Shown one piece after another: positions 3,016-36,967 of a stretch of DNA of 64,000 bases (the first letter of the stretch is position 1; each line of letters begins with the position of its first letter). Source of the stretch: Podarcis bocagei (Eukaryota); the NCBI GenBank assembly GCA_964188305.1, contig OZ076889.1. One strand, given 5' to 3'. Below the pieces are notes generated by a model, which saw only the letters and a program-made list of their open reading frames with translations, ran no database searches and had not been told where the DNA came from. The translations under genes and the position numbers were made by a program.

Positions 3016-3606
3016 TGGAGTTTGTTATAATTATTTCATTCCTCTATAGTCAGTGCTAAGCCTTCAGAGAACTGCATTTGGATTCATGGTGGGGGAGGAT
3101 GGCTTAAACTGTGCCTTCCGCCTGGAGGCTGCGTGAGAGATGGCCACCATGTTTGCTGTCCGAAAGCACTCTCATCTTTGGATAGATTGTGGCCTTCATG
3201 TGTAGAGACCCACGCGGACAAACTAATTCACAAAATCATTCCCTGAAAATGATTGTAGCACCACTACACAGGCTTCTAAGTCTCAAGCTCTAAGAGTTCT
3301 GTCTCTGCCACCTTGACTTTCCTTTTAGGATAGCGGACGGAAGCAGAGATGGTGGATGCTCTGGCATCACTGGTGAAACTTGTGCTTCCCATCAGGTATA
3401 GGACTACCTGTTCCATCATAACTGGTGGGAAACAGGTGCTATTTGCATCATTTCCGCTAGGGCAAGGCCCTGTAAGGTCCTCCTGACATGTACAGATTTA
3501 TTAAAAAATGTTCCACAGGTAAGTAACTTCAATGAACCAACAACTGATTGGTTGGATCTGAAAACTACATGGAAAGTCTGGGGATCTGGAGAGGGAAAGT
3601 CAGGGC

Positions 3607-9427: not shown

Positions 9428-10998
9428 CCAGACCTCTGCAGACTCATGTAGGTTGGGATGATAAAGTTTTGCACTTTGGGTTTTTATTGCTTGTTCCCCT
9501 TCTCTTTTTTGTGGTTTGAGGGATGAAAACACAGCTTTGTGTTACCACATTTATATTTTCAAGTTCCTGTAAATGAATGTTGTTGATTCCCAGCCCCCTC
9601 CCCCTTTTGGGCTATAGACTATGATGTCTGGCTCCCAGCAGAAGAAACCCAAACAGTCATTACAAGGGAGGCAAAGGTGGTCAGTTGAAGTAGAGCAAAT
9701 TCAAGTGGGGAATCCCCTCCATTTCCCCCCAGCTGACTAATGCCACATTCTAGTGAGTTAGGTGATAGCTCTGACCCCTATAAAACTTCCTGGCTCTTAC
9801 TATTTAGAGGGACTTCTGTCTGCAGTCTGCTTCATTCAGTTCTTGCCCTTAGGTGGAGAGGAGGCTGGACCTGACAATAGTTTGCTGCCAGCAAACAACT
9901 GCTGGAACAGTCGTCTGAGAGCCTAGCAGGTGGGGCCTGCTATCAACGACAGAATGAGGTTCACAGGGACTTGCTTAAAATGCCATTTTTCAGCTGGCCA
10001 GAGGAGAGATTGCTAAAAGAAAGTGATCATCTCTTTGTTGCCATACTTCTCTCTATTTGGCTTCTTTTGAAATCCAAGAAGCTATCAGCACAGGTGATGA
10101 TAGCATCTCTGAATTATTAGCTGTGAACATAATATTTAGTATGCTGGGGATTTTTGTGTGTCACAACAAAGTCTGCTGTCCCTTTTGTGTCGTCGAAAGA
10201 GGAGGAAAGACAGTCTCCTAGGGAGATAATTGAAGCTGATTCTTTTTTAAAATGCTGTTCAGTAGACAATACAGGGAGAAAATTATATGCAACAAACAAA
10301 AGAAGAAATGCTACTTGCCATCTTGCCCCCACTTCCCTCCTTTCAAGTTTGAAGTACAGTCTACACTCTTGTTTTAAGTGTCAGTTAGGGAAATATTTCT
10401 GCATCTGTTACCATGGCAAAGGGTGCCTTTCATTGCAAAGTGATGGACCTCAGAACCATTTTGTGAAATTAAGAAATTAATGTTGCTAGAATGGAGCACG
10501 GGTGACTCAGAAGCAAAATGGAAAAAGGAGAAAGCAGAAAGTGGCTTATTCATGGGATGAAGTGTGTTTTTTTGGGGGGGGAGAAGTGCCAACAATTTCG
10601 CAACAAAAGACACTTAGGTATTTCAATAACCATGGAAAGAATCAACTCCTGGTTTAGCAGGGCCAGATTATCTCTACCTACATAAGACTCTACTGAAATC
10701 CAGTGCAAAGTGCCCATAGCTTAATGCTGCATGCTGAAGATCTCAAGTTAATATTAGGGTTTTCCAGGTACCTGGGCTAGAAAGGACCATCTTCCTAAGA
10801 TTCTGGCTGGCAAGAACCCTCCAGAAGAGACTCAGCTAGATATATAAATTCAGACACTGGTCCTTAACAGTTTCATAAAGTGCCTGTTCTGAAAGACCAA
10901 AGCTTGAAAGATTATTCAAAGAAGTCACAGGTAAGAACATTTGGTTCCAAATTAATGGAAGGTCTACCTAGAGGTCTACCGAGGCAGCACAAACTTTA

Positions 10999-12810
10999 TT
11001 TTTTTAAAAAAACTTTTTTTATTGGTTTTTCACATTTTATAAAGACATAACACACACGAAAAAGACAAAGACAAAAACATGCATAGTTTCAAAGATCTTA
11101 CTTTCTTAACCTTGTTCCTTGACTTCCCCCCACCCCCCTTCATGCATCCCAATTCCCATAATTATGTCAGCAAGTTATTATTTCTCCTCTTTACCATCTT
11201 AATATTACATCTTTTATGAAAAATTAAGTTCTTTCCTAAGTTGGACTCAAATTCCCTTCCGTCGATTTCCCATTTTATATTAGATAAAAATCATATTAAC
11301 TAAACCCAAAAGTCATAAGTGTTTTTGAAGTTCTGTTTTCCCCCTCCCTCCCATCCCCGGTTTCCGTCCCTTCCCAAATACGTGTCCATAATAACAGTTC
11401 TTAGCCTGGATTCCTCACATCCGAGGCCTTCAAATCTCTTTCAGTCCCTCTCCGCCGGTCTTGTTGGTAGTCCTTTATGTTGGTCATCGAATCTCGAAGG
11501 AGTTCTGTCCCAATCAAACCAGGTTTTCTTCCCACAAGAGTCCTTAAAAACAACTGCTGCAAAAGTTCCACAAACCCTTCATCTTCAAAGTGGAGGCCCC
11601 AGTCATATTTCTTCTTTGTTTTAAGTTCCTGTATTCCAAATACTCCAGGGGCCCCCTCCTTCATCTTTTGCATCTTTCGCAGATTTGTAATCCATGTGAT
11701 CCAAAGGTCTTCTTGCTTATACTCCACTGATGTAAGCTTCTGGTTGGTACTTTCCATCTGTACTTTCTCCTTTCCTTGTTTAGTCTCCTTCAGTTCTTGA
11801 GATATCTCTTCCAATTCAGCTGCAGATTCTTTCTCATTCAAGTCCTCAATACATTCAGCAGAGCTGCTTATTCCAGAGGTCAAGGTCGTGAGTTGTTTGT
11901 TCATTGCCAGACTCTGCTCTTGTAAAATTCCCACAAGGTAAAACATTCTTTCTATCTCAGCTAGTAACTTTCCGTCCGCAGCCATTGTAATGTCTCAGAA
12001 TTCCCCCTAGAGGGAATCTGGTTACTTAGTAATCTTTTTCCAACAGTCCTCTGCCTCGTTGTTTGTTTCTTTGTTTCCAACAACTTTAATTCAATTGTAT
12101 CTCATTTAATCCAGAGAGATCTTAAATAACAAGTTTTTAGCTTTAAACTGCCCGTTTGACAGCTTTGACAGCTGTCAAACTCCGTATTCCTCTTCAACAG
12201 ACTCAAACACAGGACGCTCCCGGGCCCGGGAGGGGGGGTTGCACACAACAAGAAGAAAATCTCTAAAATTCCACTCTTACACTCCAGCTCAAAACTTCTT
12301 TTTACCAAATCGTGGAAGTTAATATCTTTTTTTGACTCACCCCGCAAAGGGTAGGCTCTCCAACTTAGTTCTTCTATTATTGCTTTAGATCATCTGCAGG
12401 AGGGGGGGGGTGCGGACTTCCCTTTAACACCCCCCCCGGTCGTACCGAATTCACAAGTAAATATTTTAAAGTCCGAATTCCGTTCTACTCACGGGTTACT
12501 TCTTTTCAAGTCCGAATTCAGGGGAAAAAGTCAGCGCTCTTCAGCCATGGCACACGGCTTCGCTCCACTGGGGTAGCGGTCTACTCCCAGCACCGCGCCG
12601 CTCTCCGTACCCTCTCCGAAGCCTTTAAAAAGGCTCTTCGTGGGTCAGAGGGGGCGTTTAAGGTGCCCACCGAGTCACCAGGTCCGCAGGCATCCGCGCC
12701 TGCGGTTTTTAAGGGTCTCCGCGTCGCCGTCGCGGCAAGACCCGTCTCCAGCGGAGCCGATTCCCTCCGGAGCTCGGAGGGAATCCGCCATTAGCTGTTC
12801 GCGCCAACCC
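10999..12810 (-). mobile_element. apparently complete short non-autonomous L1-like retroelement (HAL1-like architecture)
   Basis: Perfect 16-bp TSD GGCAGCACAAACTTTA (10983-10998 / 12811-12826); CpG-rich 5' end; one ORF; AATAAA plus A-rich tail on the minus strand; 3'UTR similar to L1 3'UTR at 31260-31424. Confidence 0.85.
11401..11985 (-). CDS. 194-aa ORF of the short L1-like element; ORF1p-like coiled-coil protein
   Basis: Uninterrupted ORF with a strong Kozak context (ACAATGG); Glu/Lys/Leu/Gln-rich heptad-like N-terminal half; sits in the ORF1 position after the 5'UTR. Confidence 0.55.
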   Translation of the reverse strand: MAADGKLLAEIERMFYLVGILQEQSLAMNKQLTTLTSGISSSAECIEDLNEKESAAELEEISQELKETKQGKEKVQMESTNQKLTSVEYKQEDLWITWITNLRKMQKMKEGAPGVFGIQELKTKKKYDWGLHFEDEGFVELLQQLFLRTLVGRKPGLIGTELLRDSMTNIKDYQQDRRRGTERDLKASDVRNPG

Positions 12811-14086
12811 GGCAGCACAAACTTTACCCACCTGACCACAGCAACTCCTCCTTTAGGCTCACAGCAGTTTTTGAGATTCCCCCCGACCAAGCACTGTTGA
12901 GATCTTTTCAGGCTTACAGGCTCACTCTGTTGGCTTCAGCTGCTGTCCACAGTATATTGCAATGTTGTTTTGAAGTATTTTATGCAGTTTTATTGTCATC
13001 CTGGGTTCCCCATGGGAAGGAAAGGTGGGAGATATATGTGAAATAATACTAGTGATATACGTAAATAAAATGTCTCTGGCGTAAAACCAAGGGCTAGTAG
13101 CAACTGTTGGCAAAGCTGTTGCATGAAAATCGAGGCCATCACCTTTACTAGTGATGAAGTCCCATGGAATTTCTTACTTTGACCTGGCTTGGGTGGGAAT
13201 CTGAGGACGGAATTCAGTGTCGCACAATAATGAACATCTGCACAAGCATTTAGGTTTTCCATCAAACAATTCCCTGTCTCCTCCCACTGTGTGCTGTTCT
13301 GGATGGGTGTGGGTGTCTCCAGAGCCAGTTTGGTGTGTGGAGCATGGGGCAAGAGAAGGGGGAAAGCCCCATTGTGCGGGCAAAATTTCTTGCACAGGGT
13401 TTCAGCTGTTGGGGCCTTGTTAGGTGGATCCCAAGCTGTGTTTACTCCATTTGTGAGTATGCTAAAAGGCAGATTTGCCATGTTAAGTACTTGTTGACTT
13501 TGGAGTGCTAGTTCTATCTTCTGTAGCAGCAGCAGCACCACTTCAGATTGAATTAAGGCTTACTCATCTTGTTGATGGCTTCTACTTCAGTCAGTTTCAT
13601 CATCAGCCTGAAGTAGTACACTCCTTCCAGGACTGTACCACATGGTTCTTCTGTATCTTTTAACTGGACTTCAAAGTGGCACAGTTCAGGCAGATCTCAC
13701 AGCCCAGCATGCAGATGCTATTATAGGTGTACTTGGGGAAAGTCTGGTGATGACCTGCTTTAAAGGGGTGATGAGATGGAGCACATAATATTTGGGAAGT
13801 TAGAAGTTTTTTTATTGAGGGCACATTTGTAGTCATTGTTTGCAACAAAGCACAATCACATTATTTATTAGCTCAAGAGCGCGCAATGCTATTAGAAAAC
13901 AATCTAGCAAGGCCATACAAAATTAGCACATTAATTTTACATTATGTGGGGAGGGAGAAAGGAAATTGAATTGTACATTCTGTGCATTGAAACCTTCCTT
14001 CAGTGGTGCAATACAGCTTGAGATTCCACACAAACATGCACACACACCTTAATACCTTATAACACCTTAATTCTCTGCTACATTAT

Positions 14087-28794: not shown

Positions 28795-30871
28795 TAATAC
28801 TACTTGCCTGGGCGTAAGCCCCATTGAATTCAATAGGACTTACTTGAGTAGACATGGTTAGGTTTACACTATTCCTAACAACATAGTCCCAACCCAACCT
28901 GTAGTGTTTAGAACTCCTTCCTGCAAGTAGCTTGTCCATCACTTGACTCAGGCTTCATTGAAGATTCTTAGAAATTATGCGTTTCCACACCCTAGTCTGT
29001 GTGACACCTGAATTACATGAAAAAGGGTTTCGAAACATGACAGGACATTTCTAGTGGCCTTCTCATGACGACTGCAACACATGCTCTTCTGGATCCTTTG
29101 GTGTCTGTTCTATGGACCTATTAAGGTCTACGAGTTTCTGGAGCTCCATTGCAAGGAAGGCCATCTCTTAGGGTTCTTTGGCCAGAGCTCTCGTTTCCTG
29201 GGATGGCTGAAACTCAGACATTTAGGGCAATGCATATTTTAAAATAATTGATCTGAAGGCTGTCGTGGAGGTTTGGTTCCTTGCTATTAAGTATTACCTT
29301 CCTCCTTGCAATTCCTGGGGTGCCTGGCGCTAAAAATGAAACGACAGCTTTAACGGTGAATTCTGAGCTTTTGTCATATTGAATAAAAACCTTAATGTTG
29401 CTTTAATGGAGGGCGAGGGGTTTTTGGGTGATGTTTATTAAACATATGCTCACAGTTACTGCGCAATCTATTTTCCCTGGCAAGACCACAAATGCTCAGA
29501 AAACTGCCAGCAGTAAAGAATGTGTGACTGCATTTTTTTTACAATACCGAAGGCTGTAAAAAAGATAAATAAGCTCTGCTAAACCATTTTAAGCACTCAT
29601 TTACACAGGCATTTAGCCCCTCTGCGAGAGGTCTCCCTCCTTGTATATTTCCATCCGAGCCTATATTTAATGCATTCCTATGAAAAATAGTTCCAGCCTT
29701 TTCAAACTTGCATTTACATCCCCGAGCACTATCAGATAAACTAATATTAAAAAATGGGGTTTGATTATTATTATTTTTGCTGGGCACAGCGGCTGAAACA
29801 AGCTGCGGGCAGGCGATCGTCAACCATGATTCCCCCTTGCAGATCGAGAGCCTCCCAGGCTGGCAACCGTCACCTAGTTGTGAAATGAGATAGAAATCCC
29901 ATTAATATACTTTAGGATTAGCTTCAAGGTTTCATTAACTGTTAATGCCGCCTTTACCTGAAGTGAGTATGTATCTCACACAGTATATTTACGGCGGTGG
30001 TAATGGCTTGCATTGCAATCCCTGCCAGGTATTCCATTCTGGAGACCTGGGGTTTTGCACAGACAAAGAGGAAAGGGGTGGGTGGGGAGCAAGTCATTTA
30101 AATGTATGTCTTGGAGAAAAATAAACAGCTGCAAGATGTTAGGAGGTTTTGGCCCTGGGGTATGACAAACAGAGGCTTGAAAACACCATGGTTTGCCCTG
30201 TATAAAACAAACCTCAGCAGTAATGGTTTTTTGTTTTTAAAGAGAGTTCAACATTCCTAACTAAAGAAAAGAGATGATTTTATTGGAAATGAATCACAGA
30301 ATCATAGAATGAAAGAGTTATAAGTGACCCCGAGGGTAATCTTGTATGTGAGCCTCTGTGGACGCTGTAGGCTTGCCCCCTAGGACAGTCGACACCTGTT
30401 TGAACAGGAACAGAAGGGGGCACATGTAATAGATGACTATATAAAACCCTCAATGACTCAAGGCCTAGGTATTTGTAGGAAAGTCTCTTTCTATATTGAT
30501 ATGCCTGAGATCAGCGGGGGCTGGCTGCTGCTTGTGGTCCCACTGATGGGTGTAGTTTGTGCAGAAACCTGGAGCAAGATCTCATCTGTAGTGGCATCTC
30601 AGTTGTACAACTTCCTCTGCATGGAAGTTTGGATAGCCATTACACTGATGGACCTTTGCTGCCTGGTGAAGATTTGTTCCATATGTAAGCAAGGCAGCTG
30701 CTCCTGCTACAACATCCCAAGTAGGTTTTGTAATGTTTCAGGGGAGTGGGATTGGGTGGTTGGTGAGTGTCAGGGACTGGACTGAGGAAGAATAGTGAGA
30801 GCCGCCCCCCCTCCTTTTCTGAACCTGAAGGGCAGGAGGACAGTATTGATTTAGAACAGTGGTTTGCAGAA

Positions 30872-31424
30872 ACCAGAGGCCTTTCTCTTGGGCATAGTCG
30901 GCCAATTGGTGTCAAAGAAAGACAGAATTTTCTTTATGTACGCCACGACAGCAGCAAGAATACTTATCGCAAAGTATTGGAAGACACAAGATCTACCCAC
31001 CCTGGAAGAATGGCAGATGAAAGTGATGGACTACATGACATTGGCTGAGATGACTGACAGAATCCGTGATCAGGGGAAGGAGACGGCGGAAGAAGAGTGG
31101 AAGAAGTTCAAAATTTACCTTAAGGACTACTATAAACTGCATGAATGTTAGAATGTCGAGGTTTTGAGAAAGAAAGGGCTACAGCGATATAAGATTAGAA
31201 TGAAGGAAAGATTAAGAGGACAGAGGTTTGACAGAACTATTTAGAAGTTGCTGAAAAACTTTGGACATTGGGATACAGAAAGGGGAGGTATGGGGGAGTC
31301 CGAGAAACAAGGTTTATGAAAAAAAGGGTACGAAACTATACATGTTTGTATGTCTTTTTATATGTTTGTATTGTTTTTTAAAAAAACTTTTTGTAAAACC
31401 AATAAAAATCTTAAAAAAAAAAAA
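30872..31424 (+). mobile_element. 5'-truncated L1 (ORF2 C-terminus, 3'UTR, poly-A)
   Basis: PEAFLLG...TTAARILIAKYWK..PT.EEW..K L1 ORF2 end; AATAAA plus A tail; perfect 20-bp TSD TAGAACAGTGGTTTGCAGAA (30852-30871 / 31425-31444). Confidence 0.92.
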
Positions 31425-31669
31425 TAGAACAGTGGTTTGCAGAAGGGCATAAGTCCAGAGGCGGAAAGCTGGGAAATACTGGGTGCGGAACAGCTAGGAG
31501 AGGAAACACCAAGAGAGAGACAGCTGGCAGATTCAGTATCCTTGGACAGCATTCCTGACACCCCTTCGCCCAAGACTAGAAGGGCTTGGAAAGTGTTAGA
31601 ACAGAAAGCGCAATGGCAAGAAGCTCAGATTACCCAACAGAGGAGTGACGTAGATTAATGGGGACAGAG

Positions 31670-36793: not shown

Positions 36794-36967
36794 NNNNNNN
36801 NNNNNNNNNNNNNNNNNNNNNNNNNNNNNNNNNNNNNNNNNNNNNNNNNNNNNNNNNNNNNNNNNNNNNNNNNNNNNNNNNNNNNNNNNNNNNNNNNNNN
36901 NNNNNNNNNNNNNNNNNNNNNNNNNNNNNNNNNNNNNNNNNNNNNNNNNNNNNNNNNNNNNNNNNNN
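36794..36967. other. assembly gap (174 N)
   Basis: Run of N. Confidence 1.

Follow-up and report, generated by a model that had tools for sequence, protein, structure and literature searches.

A high-copy retroposon family of lacertid lizards, most probably a half-L1, with a single short open reading frame

Introduction

How does a 1.8-kb retroposon that encodes neither an endonuclease nor a reverse transcriptase (RT) spread in a genome, and what is the one short protein that it does encode? These questions are raised by a stretch of 64,000 nucleotides of the lizard Podarcis bocagei (GenBank assembly GCA_964188305.1, contig OZ076889.1; hereafter the window), in which positions 10999-12810 on the minus strand form a discrete insertion of 1812 bp bracketed by a perfect 16-bp target-site duplication (TSD). 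A first-pass annotation, made from the sequence letters, had taken this element for a non-autonomous parasite of LINE-1 (L1). That view is borne out by a recurrent family with a single short open reading frame (ORF), L1-derived ends and no endonuclease or RT. The element very probably represents a high-copy family of L1-derived non-autonomous retroposons of lacertids, a half-L1 similar to the HAL1 elements of mammals. What was observed directly is an insertion for which an empty site exists, its recurrence as a family, L1 sequence at both ends, no endonuclease or RT, an ORF under purifying selection, and RNA of the family. New in this analysis are the empty site, the RNA evidence, autonomous partners whose 5′ untranslated regions (5′UTRs) match, and a statistical link of the ORF to the L1 protein ORF1p.

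Anatomy of the insertion

The insertion and its parts are as follows.

12811..12826, no strand: 5′ copy of the TSD, TAAAGTTTGTGCTGCC, an exact 16-mer; spanned by empty-site contigs in runs X1 and X4
10999..12810, minus: complete non-autonomous L1-derived retroposon of 1812 bp, bounded by the TSD and aligned end to end with a P. lilfordi copy
11986..12810, minus: 5′UTR of L1 type, 825 nt, by alignment with L1 5′UTRs, with 5 short upstream ORFs by count of upstream ATGs
11401..11985, minus: intact ORF of 194 aa plus stop, probably a shrunken ORF1p, with a long N-terminal helix and the C-terminus ...RRGTERDLKASDVRNPG-stop
10999..11400, minus: 3′UTR of 402 nt, from the layout of the element
10999..11217, minus: L1-type 3′ end, the last ~220 nt, by local alignment with the 3′UTR of an L1 tail at window 30864-31425
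11018..11023, minus: AATAAA polyadenylation signal in the context CCAATAAAAA, which is also found at the end of that L1 tail
10999..11017, minus: A-rich tail AAAAGTTTTTTTAAAAAAA, directly adjoining the TSD
10983..10998, no strand: 3′ copy of the TSD, TAAAGTTTGTGCTGCC, an exact 16-mer

The 16-mer TAAAGTTTGTGCTGCC is present exactly twice in the window, and two matches were found in none of 100 shuffles. The target site, GGGT/AAAG, has a limited likeness to TT/AAAA and thus fits the preference of the L1 endonuclease only loosely. The ATG of the 194-aa ORF stands in a strong Kozak context (ACAATGG, with A at -3 and G at +4). Apart from this frame no ORF longer than 81 aa lies on the element's strand within the element, and two longer listed frames (101 and 107 aa) are antisense to the main ORF. 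Similarity to an endonuclease or RT was found neither by a Pfam search with the ORF nor by tblastn, in which an 834-aa lizard ORF2 and the C-terminal part of an ORF2 served as queries and neither the element nor its relatives gave a match. The ORF2 with apurinic-type endonuclease and RT by which an autonomous LINE-1 is recognised is therefore missing from the element. A search of the element against Rfam returned nothing at E values up to 1.

The first-pass annotation had listed the perfect TSD, a 5′UTR of about 825 bp with a CpG-rich start, a hairpin near 12760-12785, the intact ORF with its Kozak context, a 3′UTR of about 400 nt with AATAAA and an A-rich tail, and the absence of endonuclease and RT, and all of these were recovered here. 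It had also called the element apparently complete, which holds in that its ends match a P. lilfordi copy over positions 1-1812 and fails in that about 6 nt are missing at the 5′ end of the window copy, because sister copies and L1s start with ACTTCCGGG or GCTTCCGGG.

An empty site and the age of the insertion

Contigs from two DNA runs, X1 and X4 (public runs with different organism labels), connect position 10982 straight to 12811. The sequence skipped in these empty-site contigs is 1828 nt long, which equals the element plus one copy of the TSD. The flanks in X1 match the window at all but 3 of 509 positions, and the insertion is therefore absent from a conspecific or a very close relative. 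The empty site, the perfect TSD and the undecayed CpGs point to a recent or polymorphic insertion.

A dispersed family of related elements

The first-pass annotation had set beforehand, as a test, whether the structure was unique to this copy; it recurs elsewhere with identical ends and different TSDs. A P. lilfordi copy (locus L003) aligns to positions 1-1812 of the element with 88.8% identity and is flanked by its own TSD of 13/14 bp (TAACTGTTTCTATC / TAACTATTTCTATC). The 5′ start ACTTCCGGG is common to this copy, two more mini copies and one RT-bearing L1, and a second L1 starts with GCTTCCGGG. Few complete copies were inspected, and it is among these that identical ends combined with different TSDs were found.

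A word-index search with the ORF recovered nine relatives of 129-214 aa with 39-79% identity, from P. lilfordi and from short contigs of other runs. The contigs L001, L004-L006 and L008-L010 show the same order of 5′UTR blocks, ORF and a conserved block after the stop codon, and the proteins of their subfamilies are only 25-50% identical to that of the window. Two proteins that are entered for P. lilfordi as "hypothetical predicted proteins" (P0002 and P0008) represent copies of the mini-element ORF.

At locus L002 a 3′-truncated mini copy is preceded directly upstream by a much more diverged member, hereafter L002-a. The two stand head to tail (L002:1501-4521, P. lilfordi OX395126), as a nested or tandem insertion. 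L002-a (1501 to ~3150) is frameshifted; its ORF ends in ...DIRLPG-stop and the copy is cut off shortly after the stop. The second member begins with ACTTCCGGG at 3151, exactly where the first breaks off, and is the one that is itself 3′-truncated.

In run X1 the summed word depth, which is not a copy number, was 1.4e4-3.8e5 over the element and 73 over the single-copy flanks (roughly 200-5000x); in run X4 it was 490-7.5e4 over the element and 16 over the flanks. The depth over the ORF is no lower than that over the element ends. Placed by summed word depth, the family numbers hundreds to thousands.

Both ends of the element are L1-derived

The window contains, at 30864-31425 on the plus strand, a 5′-truncated L1 copy consisting of the last 95 codons of ORF2, a 3′UTR of ~265 nt, an AATAAA and an A-tail. 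The ORF of this tail is 59% identical to a protein (P0025) that matches residues 1133-1253, the C-terminus, of human L1 ORF2p (E = 3.4e-6). The last ~220 nt of the element align with the end of the 3′UTR of this L1 copy; by this alignment, the 3′ end of the element is L1-derived. The element thus has the L1-type 3′ end, polyadenylation signal, A-tail and TSD by which a HAL1-type element is recognised. In the P. lilfordi copy at L003, CCAATTAAAA stands in the place of the CCAATAAAAA of the window copy.

At the other end, the comparison was made with two L1s. Locus L007 of P. raffonei carries, on the minus strand, an L1 with an 834-aa RT-bearing ORF, and at locus L011 of P. lilfordi lies an L1 of nearly full length, whose intact ORF1 of 370 aa (P0027) precedes an Exo_endo_phos ORF2 with RT. 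The mini element and both L1s have the same sequence at their 5′ start. Over its first 326-346 nt the element is 72.5-73% identical to the 5′UTRs of these L1s, the value for the first 346 nt against the L011 L1 being 72.5%, and the mean column identity over the first ~130 nt is 83% (four mini copies and two L1s). In a multiple alignment with the RT-bearing P. raffonei L1 (A5), conserved blocks extend along nearly the whole leader of ~800 nt. Among them are the TAATGGCGG box, a pair of stem-loops near the 5′ end, the invariant ACCCGTGAGTAG and two palindromes, one being TGACAGCTGTCA and the other lying just before the ATG. On the strength of these alignments the 5′UTR, too, is L1-derived. The first-pass annotation had called for an alignment with a full-length L1, and both the 5′UTR and the 3′ end do align.

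The features of the leader are as follows.

12411..12810, minus: CpG-rich start, presumed internal Pol II promoter, from the composition of the first 400 nt
12785..12793, minus: TAATGGCGG box, 18-26 nt from the 5′ end of the window copy, from alignment A6
12759..12785, minus: hairpin or palindrome with 11-bp arms and a 5-nt loop, kept in all six 5′ ends including those of two autonomous-type L1s
12713..12743, minus: second conserved 5′ stem-loop (GGGTCT...AGACCC), from the RNAalifold consensus
12485..12496, minus: invariant 12-mer ACCCGTGAGTAG, splice-donor-like, identical in 6/6 aligned 5′UTRs of mini elements and L1s
12166-12177, minus: palindrome TGACAGCTGTCA, recurring with variants in diverged subfamilies and L1 leaders
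11998..12018, minus: palindrome GATTCCCTCTAGGGGGAATTC, just upstream of the ATG, with variants in mini subfamilies and L1 5′UTRs

The first 400 nt have a CpG observed/expected ratio of 1.08-1.18 (38 CpGs) and a GC content of 0.54-0.64, compared with a CpG ratio of 0.35 for the whole window, and presumably act as an internal Pol II promoter. Within the TAATGGCGG box, TAATGGC is invariant across the mini elements and the two L1s (alignment A6); the human L1 5′UTR carries a YY1 site close to its start, which this box presumably resembles. In the hairpin at 12759-12785, the pair at columns 34/58 still pairs after changes on both sides, and in the second stem-loop the pair 88/96 is G-C in 3/6 sequences and U-A in 3/6; with six sequences only, this covariation support is modest. 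The ACCCGTGAGTAG block is carried by the window element and by L002, L003, L007, L008 and L009. Splicing at its invariant GTGAGT was considered and rejected: RNA reads showed no GT-AG joints, and the joints seen are length variants between subfamilies.

Conservation and selection of the 194-aa ORF

The ORF of the window copy gave no Pfam match even at E values up to 10, only sub-threshold matches in the ESM Atlas and no relative among PDB profiles, and a lookup of its exact sequence found no existing record. A HMMER profile search of 1.84 billion representative proteins returned 11 matches of 129-215 aa, all of them members of the family, and no related host protein among these representatives.

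Fifteen members with 25-79% identity to the window protein have in common a start of the form M-A-x-x-x-K..F.L.G.LQ and an end of the form KDYQQNR.RGTERDL[KR]ASDVRNPG-stop, and all complete, unbroken members stop directly after PG. The first-pass annotation had proposed to examine whether the ORF is conserved among copies. Pairwise dN/dS (Nei-Gojobori) across diverged subfamilies was 0.32-0.61, with bootstrap 95% upper limits of 0.55-0.97 and dS of 0.33-1.14. By these ratios the ORF is under purifying selection. The most constrained regions are the first 45 and the last 35 codons; because dS in the constrained parts is as high as elsewhere, the constraint lies on the protein and not on the RNA.

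The long N-terminal helix is the sole part of the protein that is confidently predicted. AlphaFold2 (AF2) models place it at residues 2-68 of the window protein, with a predicted local distance difference test score (pLDDT) of 63-76 over the first 40, and at residues 3-44 of a related protein of the family (P0014), with pLDDT 81-94. This helix aligns with the coiled coil of ORF1p.

Three leads concerning the C-terminus were followed. A 2A-like skipping signal at DVRNPG-stop was rejected, as some members end in RLPG, RSPG or IDPG and no ORF follows. The 2A consensus is D(V/I)ExNPGP, and the 2A-like reading also fails on register, being one residue short of it. An origin of the C-terminus from the last codons of ORF2 was likewise rejected, the match being limited to 9 nt and KDY, at chance level. 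That the PG terminus might be a glycine-end degron is pure speculation.

Probable descent from ORF1p

The ORF probably descends from ORF1p of L1, and a shrunken ORF1p is the more likely origin than a new protein. One connection is L002-a, in which the N-terminal 117 aa match the N-terminus of an L1 ORF1 (P0026; BLASTP E = 1e-8) and the family profile picks up the C-terminal 101 aa (E = 3.7e-10), which close with ...GRDLRASDIRLPG-stop. A second connection is P0014, whose residues 24-178 are collinear with residues 93-224 of the intact lizard ORF1p P0027 (E = 3e-4 in a single comparison, one of about nine tried; ~23% identity to the coil); the matched stretch leads from the coil to within the first half of the RRM (DFW...AF..R). 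A family hidden Markov model (HMM) scored 16.8 bits on P0027, compared with a maximum of 16.6 among 1000 globally shuffled and 2000 local-composition-preserving sequences. A long-subfamily HMM scored 13.2 bits on the same protein, which was reached by 0/1000 shuffles (maximum 9.9), and also hits P0026 in the same register, with 9/1000 shuffles as high. In addition, the ATG lies at the position of ORF1, at the end of the shared leader, and the ORF start MAADGKLLAEIER resembles the ORF1 start of P0027, MADGRGKLELIQEK, the first 13 residues being similar.

P0027 itself (L011:7001-8113), named "L1 transposable element RRM domain-containing protein" by one source, gave no Pfam Transposase_22 match at E values up to 1 and no match to PDB ORF1p by phmmer. 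Since a genuine ORF1p fails both Pfam and PDB, the missing Pfam hit of the 194-aa ORF is uninformative. The subfamily to which the window copy belongs appears to have lost the low-complexity stretch at the N-terminus, together with a segment around the first RRM strand. No RRM is recognisable in the ORF by Pfam (E up to 10) or as strands in the AF2 models, and traces of it are vestigial collinear motifs in long subfamilies only. The C-terminal domain (CTD) is not recognisable either, since neither P0027 nor another L1 ORF1 is matched significantly by the C-terminal third of the profile. The earlier statement that the ORF has no clear RRM or CTD thus holds for recognisable domains; it has to be qualified by the profile and pairwise links to ORF1p, which run from the coil into the start of the RRM. 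We claim no mapping for the C-terminal motif, because three hand mappings onto the RRM/CTD of ORF1p were equally plausible.

Several observations weigh against the reading of the element as a half-L1 with a shrunken ORF1. The profile and structure comparison with ORF1p suggested at the outset had a divided outcome: the family HMM exceeded all shuffles as described above, and hhalign of family against ORF1 alignments was not significant (E 0.02-0.065). BLASTP of the window ORF against P0027 gave E = 17, the profile cut into thirds was not significant, a broader alternative profile (A7) reached only p ~0.012, and a more distant L1 ORF1 lineage gave no signal. The AF2 models from two alignments (window protein and P0014) are poor, with a mean pLDDT of 46, and neither of these low-confidence models contains beta strands or an RRM. 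The link to ORF1p is statistically modest, and L002-a may have arisen by recombination instead of being an intermediate. No source was found for about 180 nt that follow the stop codon. Word depth, by which the family size is placed, is not a count of copies. Finally, the homologues used for dN/dS came from protein databases, which list only intact ORFs; such sampling does not by itself produce ratios below 1.

Family RNA

Raw reads of single-cell RNA-seq, from an organism labelled as in the best-matching DNA run, were compared with the element at a threshold of 90% likeness. On the element 822 reads were found and on the flanks 0; of the former, 18 were at least 99% and 136 were 95-99% alike. 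RNA of the family is present. Two reservations apply: the reads show family transcripts and not the window copy, because they are mostly 90-95% alike, and read-through or DNA carry-over may be their source.

Over the ORF and the 3′UTR, one strand was favoured 3- to 10-fold (for example, 66.8 against 8.7 at 11105-11185). Droplet 3′ chemistry usually yields a sense cDNA read, in which case the favoured strand is the coding strand of the element. At the CpG-rich 5′ end (12644-12805), unlike the rest of the element, reads were about equal on both strands, a pattern that could stem from a promoter active in antisense or in both directions, as in mammalian L1, or from mixed read-through. No GT-AG splice joints were seen in the RNA reads over the element. 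A loose end at 12792 was considered as a template-switch oligo marking a transcript start at ACTTCC, and this reading was discarded, the agreement of 0.68 being too weak.

Proposed life cycle and alternatives

The element would be transcribed by Pol II from the L1-type internal promoter in its CpG-rich 825-nt 5′UTR, and the transcript would be polyadenylated at its own AATAAA. Translation would yield the 194-aa protein, a diverged and shortened ORF1p descendant that may have kept the N-terminal start and the long coiled-coil-type helix, with the RRM and CTD degenerate or lost and a basic C-terminal motif conserved. As ORF1p does, this protein probably coats or marks its own polyadenylated RNA in cis. 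ORF2p from autonomous L1s with the same kind of ends would then reverse-transcribe the RNA in trans by target priming, and ORF2p-driven insertion would leave the A-tail and TSDs of 13-16 bp. We infer the mobilisation in trans by ORF2p because the element has an A-tail and a TSD and lacks an RT, and because L1s with matching ends coexist with it.

A stronger role for the protein is conceivable. In this proposal it is a minimal ORF1p without the RRM/CTD fold that is essential to the parasite; the coil would plug into the ORF1p trimers or ribonucleoprotein particle (RNP) of the partner, the invariant basic C-terminus ending in PG-stop would be a new module, and ORF2p would be stolen by protein mimicry rather than through RNA features alone. 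The module might serve, for example, RNA binding, ribosome-linked cis marking or controlled turnover, which is speculative. We consider this proposal doubtful.

The protein might instead interfere with its partner, the coil forming mixed trimers with the partner's ORF1p and thereby capturing the RNP or ORF2p, or poisoning the competing L1. A coil that hijacks or inhibits the partner's ORF1p trimers had already been put forward in the first-pass annotation. Such a role would suit a protein whose one confident prediction is a long N-terminal helix aligning with the coiled coil of lizard ORF1p and in which neither RRM nor CTD can be recognised. Diverged L1 ORF1p coiled coils, for their part, seldom co-assemble, and identity to the partner's coil is only ~23%; moreover, the most conserved part of the protein is the basic C-terminal motif and not the coil alone. 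Interference of this kind is therefore unlikely.

Equally improbable is an ORF that was captured or arose de novo and replaced ORF1 in an L1 shell, so that its likeness to ORF1p would be a matter of coiled-coil composition. The lack of relatives in Pfam, the Atlas and PDB agrees with such an origin, as do the non-significant hhalign and split-profile results and the BLASTP value against P0027. It is contradicted by the shuffles that preserve local composition, which stay below the real profile score, by the extension of the P0014 match beyond the coil into the RRM, by the union of a clear ORF1 N-terminus and the family C-terminus within the same element type in L002-a, and by the start codon at the ORF1 position with its similar first 13 residues.

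TSD, AATAAA, A-tail and a single ORF are also marks of processed pseudogenes, and a PDB profile had weakly matched residues 1-43 of the ORF to the N-terminus (1-43) of neuroguidin (E = 0.73). A processed retrocopy of a host mRNA made by L1 is nevertheless highly improbable: the exhaustive profile search returned neither neuroguidin nor any other host protein, the 5′UTR and the 3′ end are both those of L1, word depth exceeds that of the flanks by a factor of hundreds to thousands, and many diverged subfamilies share the same layout. The neuroguidin lead was rejected on the first two of these grounds. An isolated event, in which a single L1 copy lost its interior, can be practically dismissed, as can an artefact of assembly, given copies in other species with identical ends and different TSDs, contigs of unrelated runs that carry the element, and the empty site in two runs.

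Relation to known systems

Half-L1 elements of the kind favoured here are described in PMC5753468 (citing Smit 1999; Bao and Jurka 2010), where HAL1 ("half-L1") denotes non-autonomous L1 derivatives that encode only ORF1p and had several independent origins in mammals. Mammalian HAL1 and the lizard element share L1 ends, the lack of ORF2, high copy number and, probably so in the lizard, a single gene derived from ORF1 and the need for L1 ORF2p in trans. They differ in the host, a lacertid, and thus in origin, which would be separate since the host is a lizard. The lizard ORF is about half as long as the lizards' own ORF1p (194 compared with 370 aa), has no RRM or CTD recognisable by Pfam, PDB or AF2, and possesses a family-specific, strongly conserved C-terminus ending in PG-stop. 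The lizard family also differs from HAL1 in appearing currently active. Full-text literature searches, with Repbase outside their scope, found no description of a HAL1 or half-L1 in squamates.

The autonomous Podarcis L1s (L011 with P0027, and L007) have the same 5′ start as the element (ACTTCCGGG, then TAATGGCGG, then the hairpin), the same 5′UTR blocks, and the same type of 3′ end and polyadenylation signal, and the ORF of the element starts at their ORF1 position. The element differs from them in its length (1.8 kb compared with roughly 6 kb), in lacking endonuclease and RT, in the loss of the N-terminal low-complexity stretch of ORF1, and in its degenerate RRM/CTD.

Alu, SVA and processed pseudogenes resemble the element in their A-tail, TSD and A-rich target site and, presumably, in their dependence on L1 ORF2p; they are non-coding or dead copies of host genes, whereas the element has an L1-type promoter region and its own protein under selection. 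HeT-A/TART of Drosophila telomeres likewise involve a Gag-only non-LTR element that relies on the RT of a partner. As they belong to a different LINE clade and are telomere-specific and domesticated, this analogy is functional only.

To our knowledge, HAL1 is known only as old fossils in mammals, and the purpose of an ORF1-only design could thus not be asked there. The lizard family appears to be alive, because the perfect TSD, the empty allele, the undecayed CpG-rich start, the family RNA and the intact ORFs under selection all speak for it. With ORF1p probably pared down to about half its size, it can be tested what a passenger RNA requires of ORF1p in order to gain ORF2p in trans, by what means cis-preference is bypassed, and whether reptile L1s, of which many lineages coexist, are shaped in their evolution by L1 parasites. 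There is also a consequence for annotation: mini-element ORFs are recorded in Podarcis assemblies as "hypothetical proteins" and even as genes, and family models built on mammals miss squamate ORF1p, so that "no Pfam hit" says little for such ORFs.

Other internally deleted L1s and minor observations

A second kind of mini-L1, in which ORF1 is fused to the tail of ORF2 (L003:274-1480; gene model P0026), is likewise internally deleted with complete ends and apparently propagated. The element differs from these fusions in containing no ORF2 codons and in its much more diverged ORF. At L003:274-1480 (P. lilfordi OX395132), a clearly recognisable ORF1 N-terminus continues in frame into the last ~100 codons of ORF2 (...NLRIRV joined to HLWWTCP...), followed by an L1 3′UTR and an A-tail. 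At L007:8001-9693 (P. raffonei CM049768), the N-terminus of an L1 ORF1 and part of the RT of ORF2 have been combined in the annotated spliced gene model LOC128406054 (P0026), which is a transposon model and not a host gene. Elsewhere in the window, positions 36794-36967 are a run of 174 N, an assembly gap or masked sequence.

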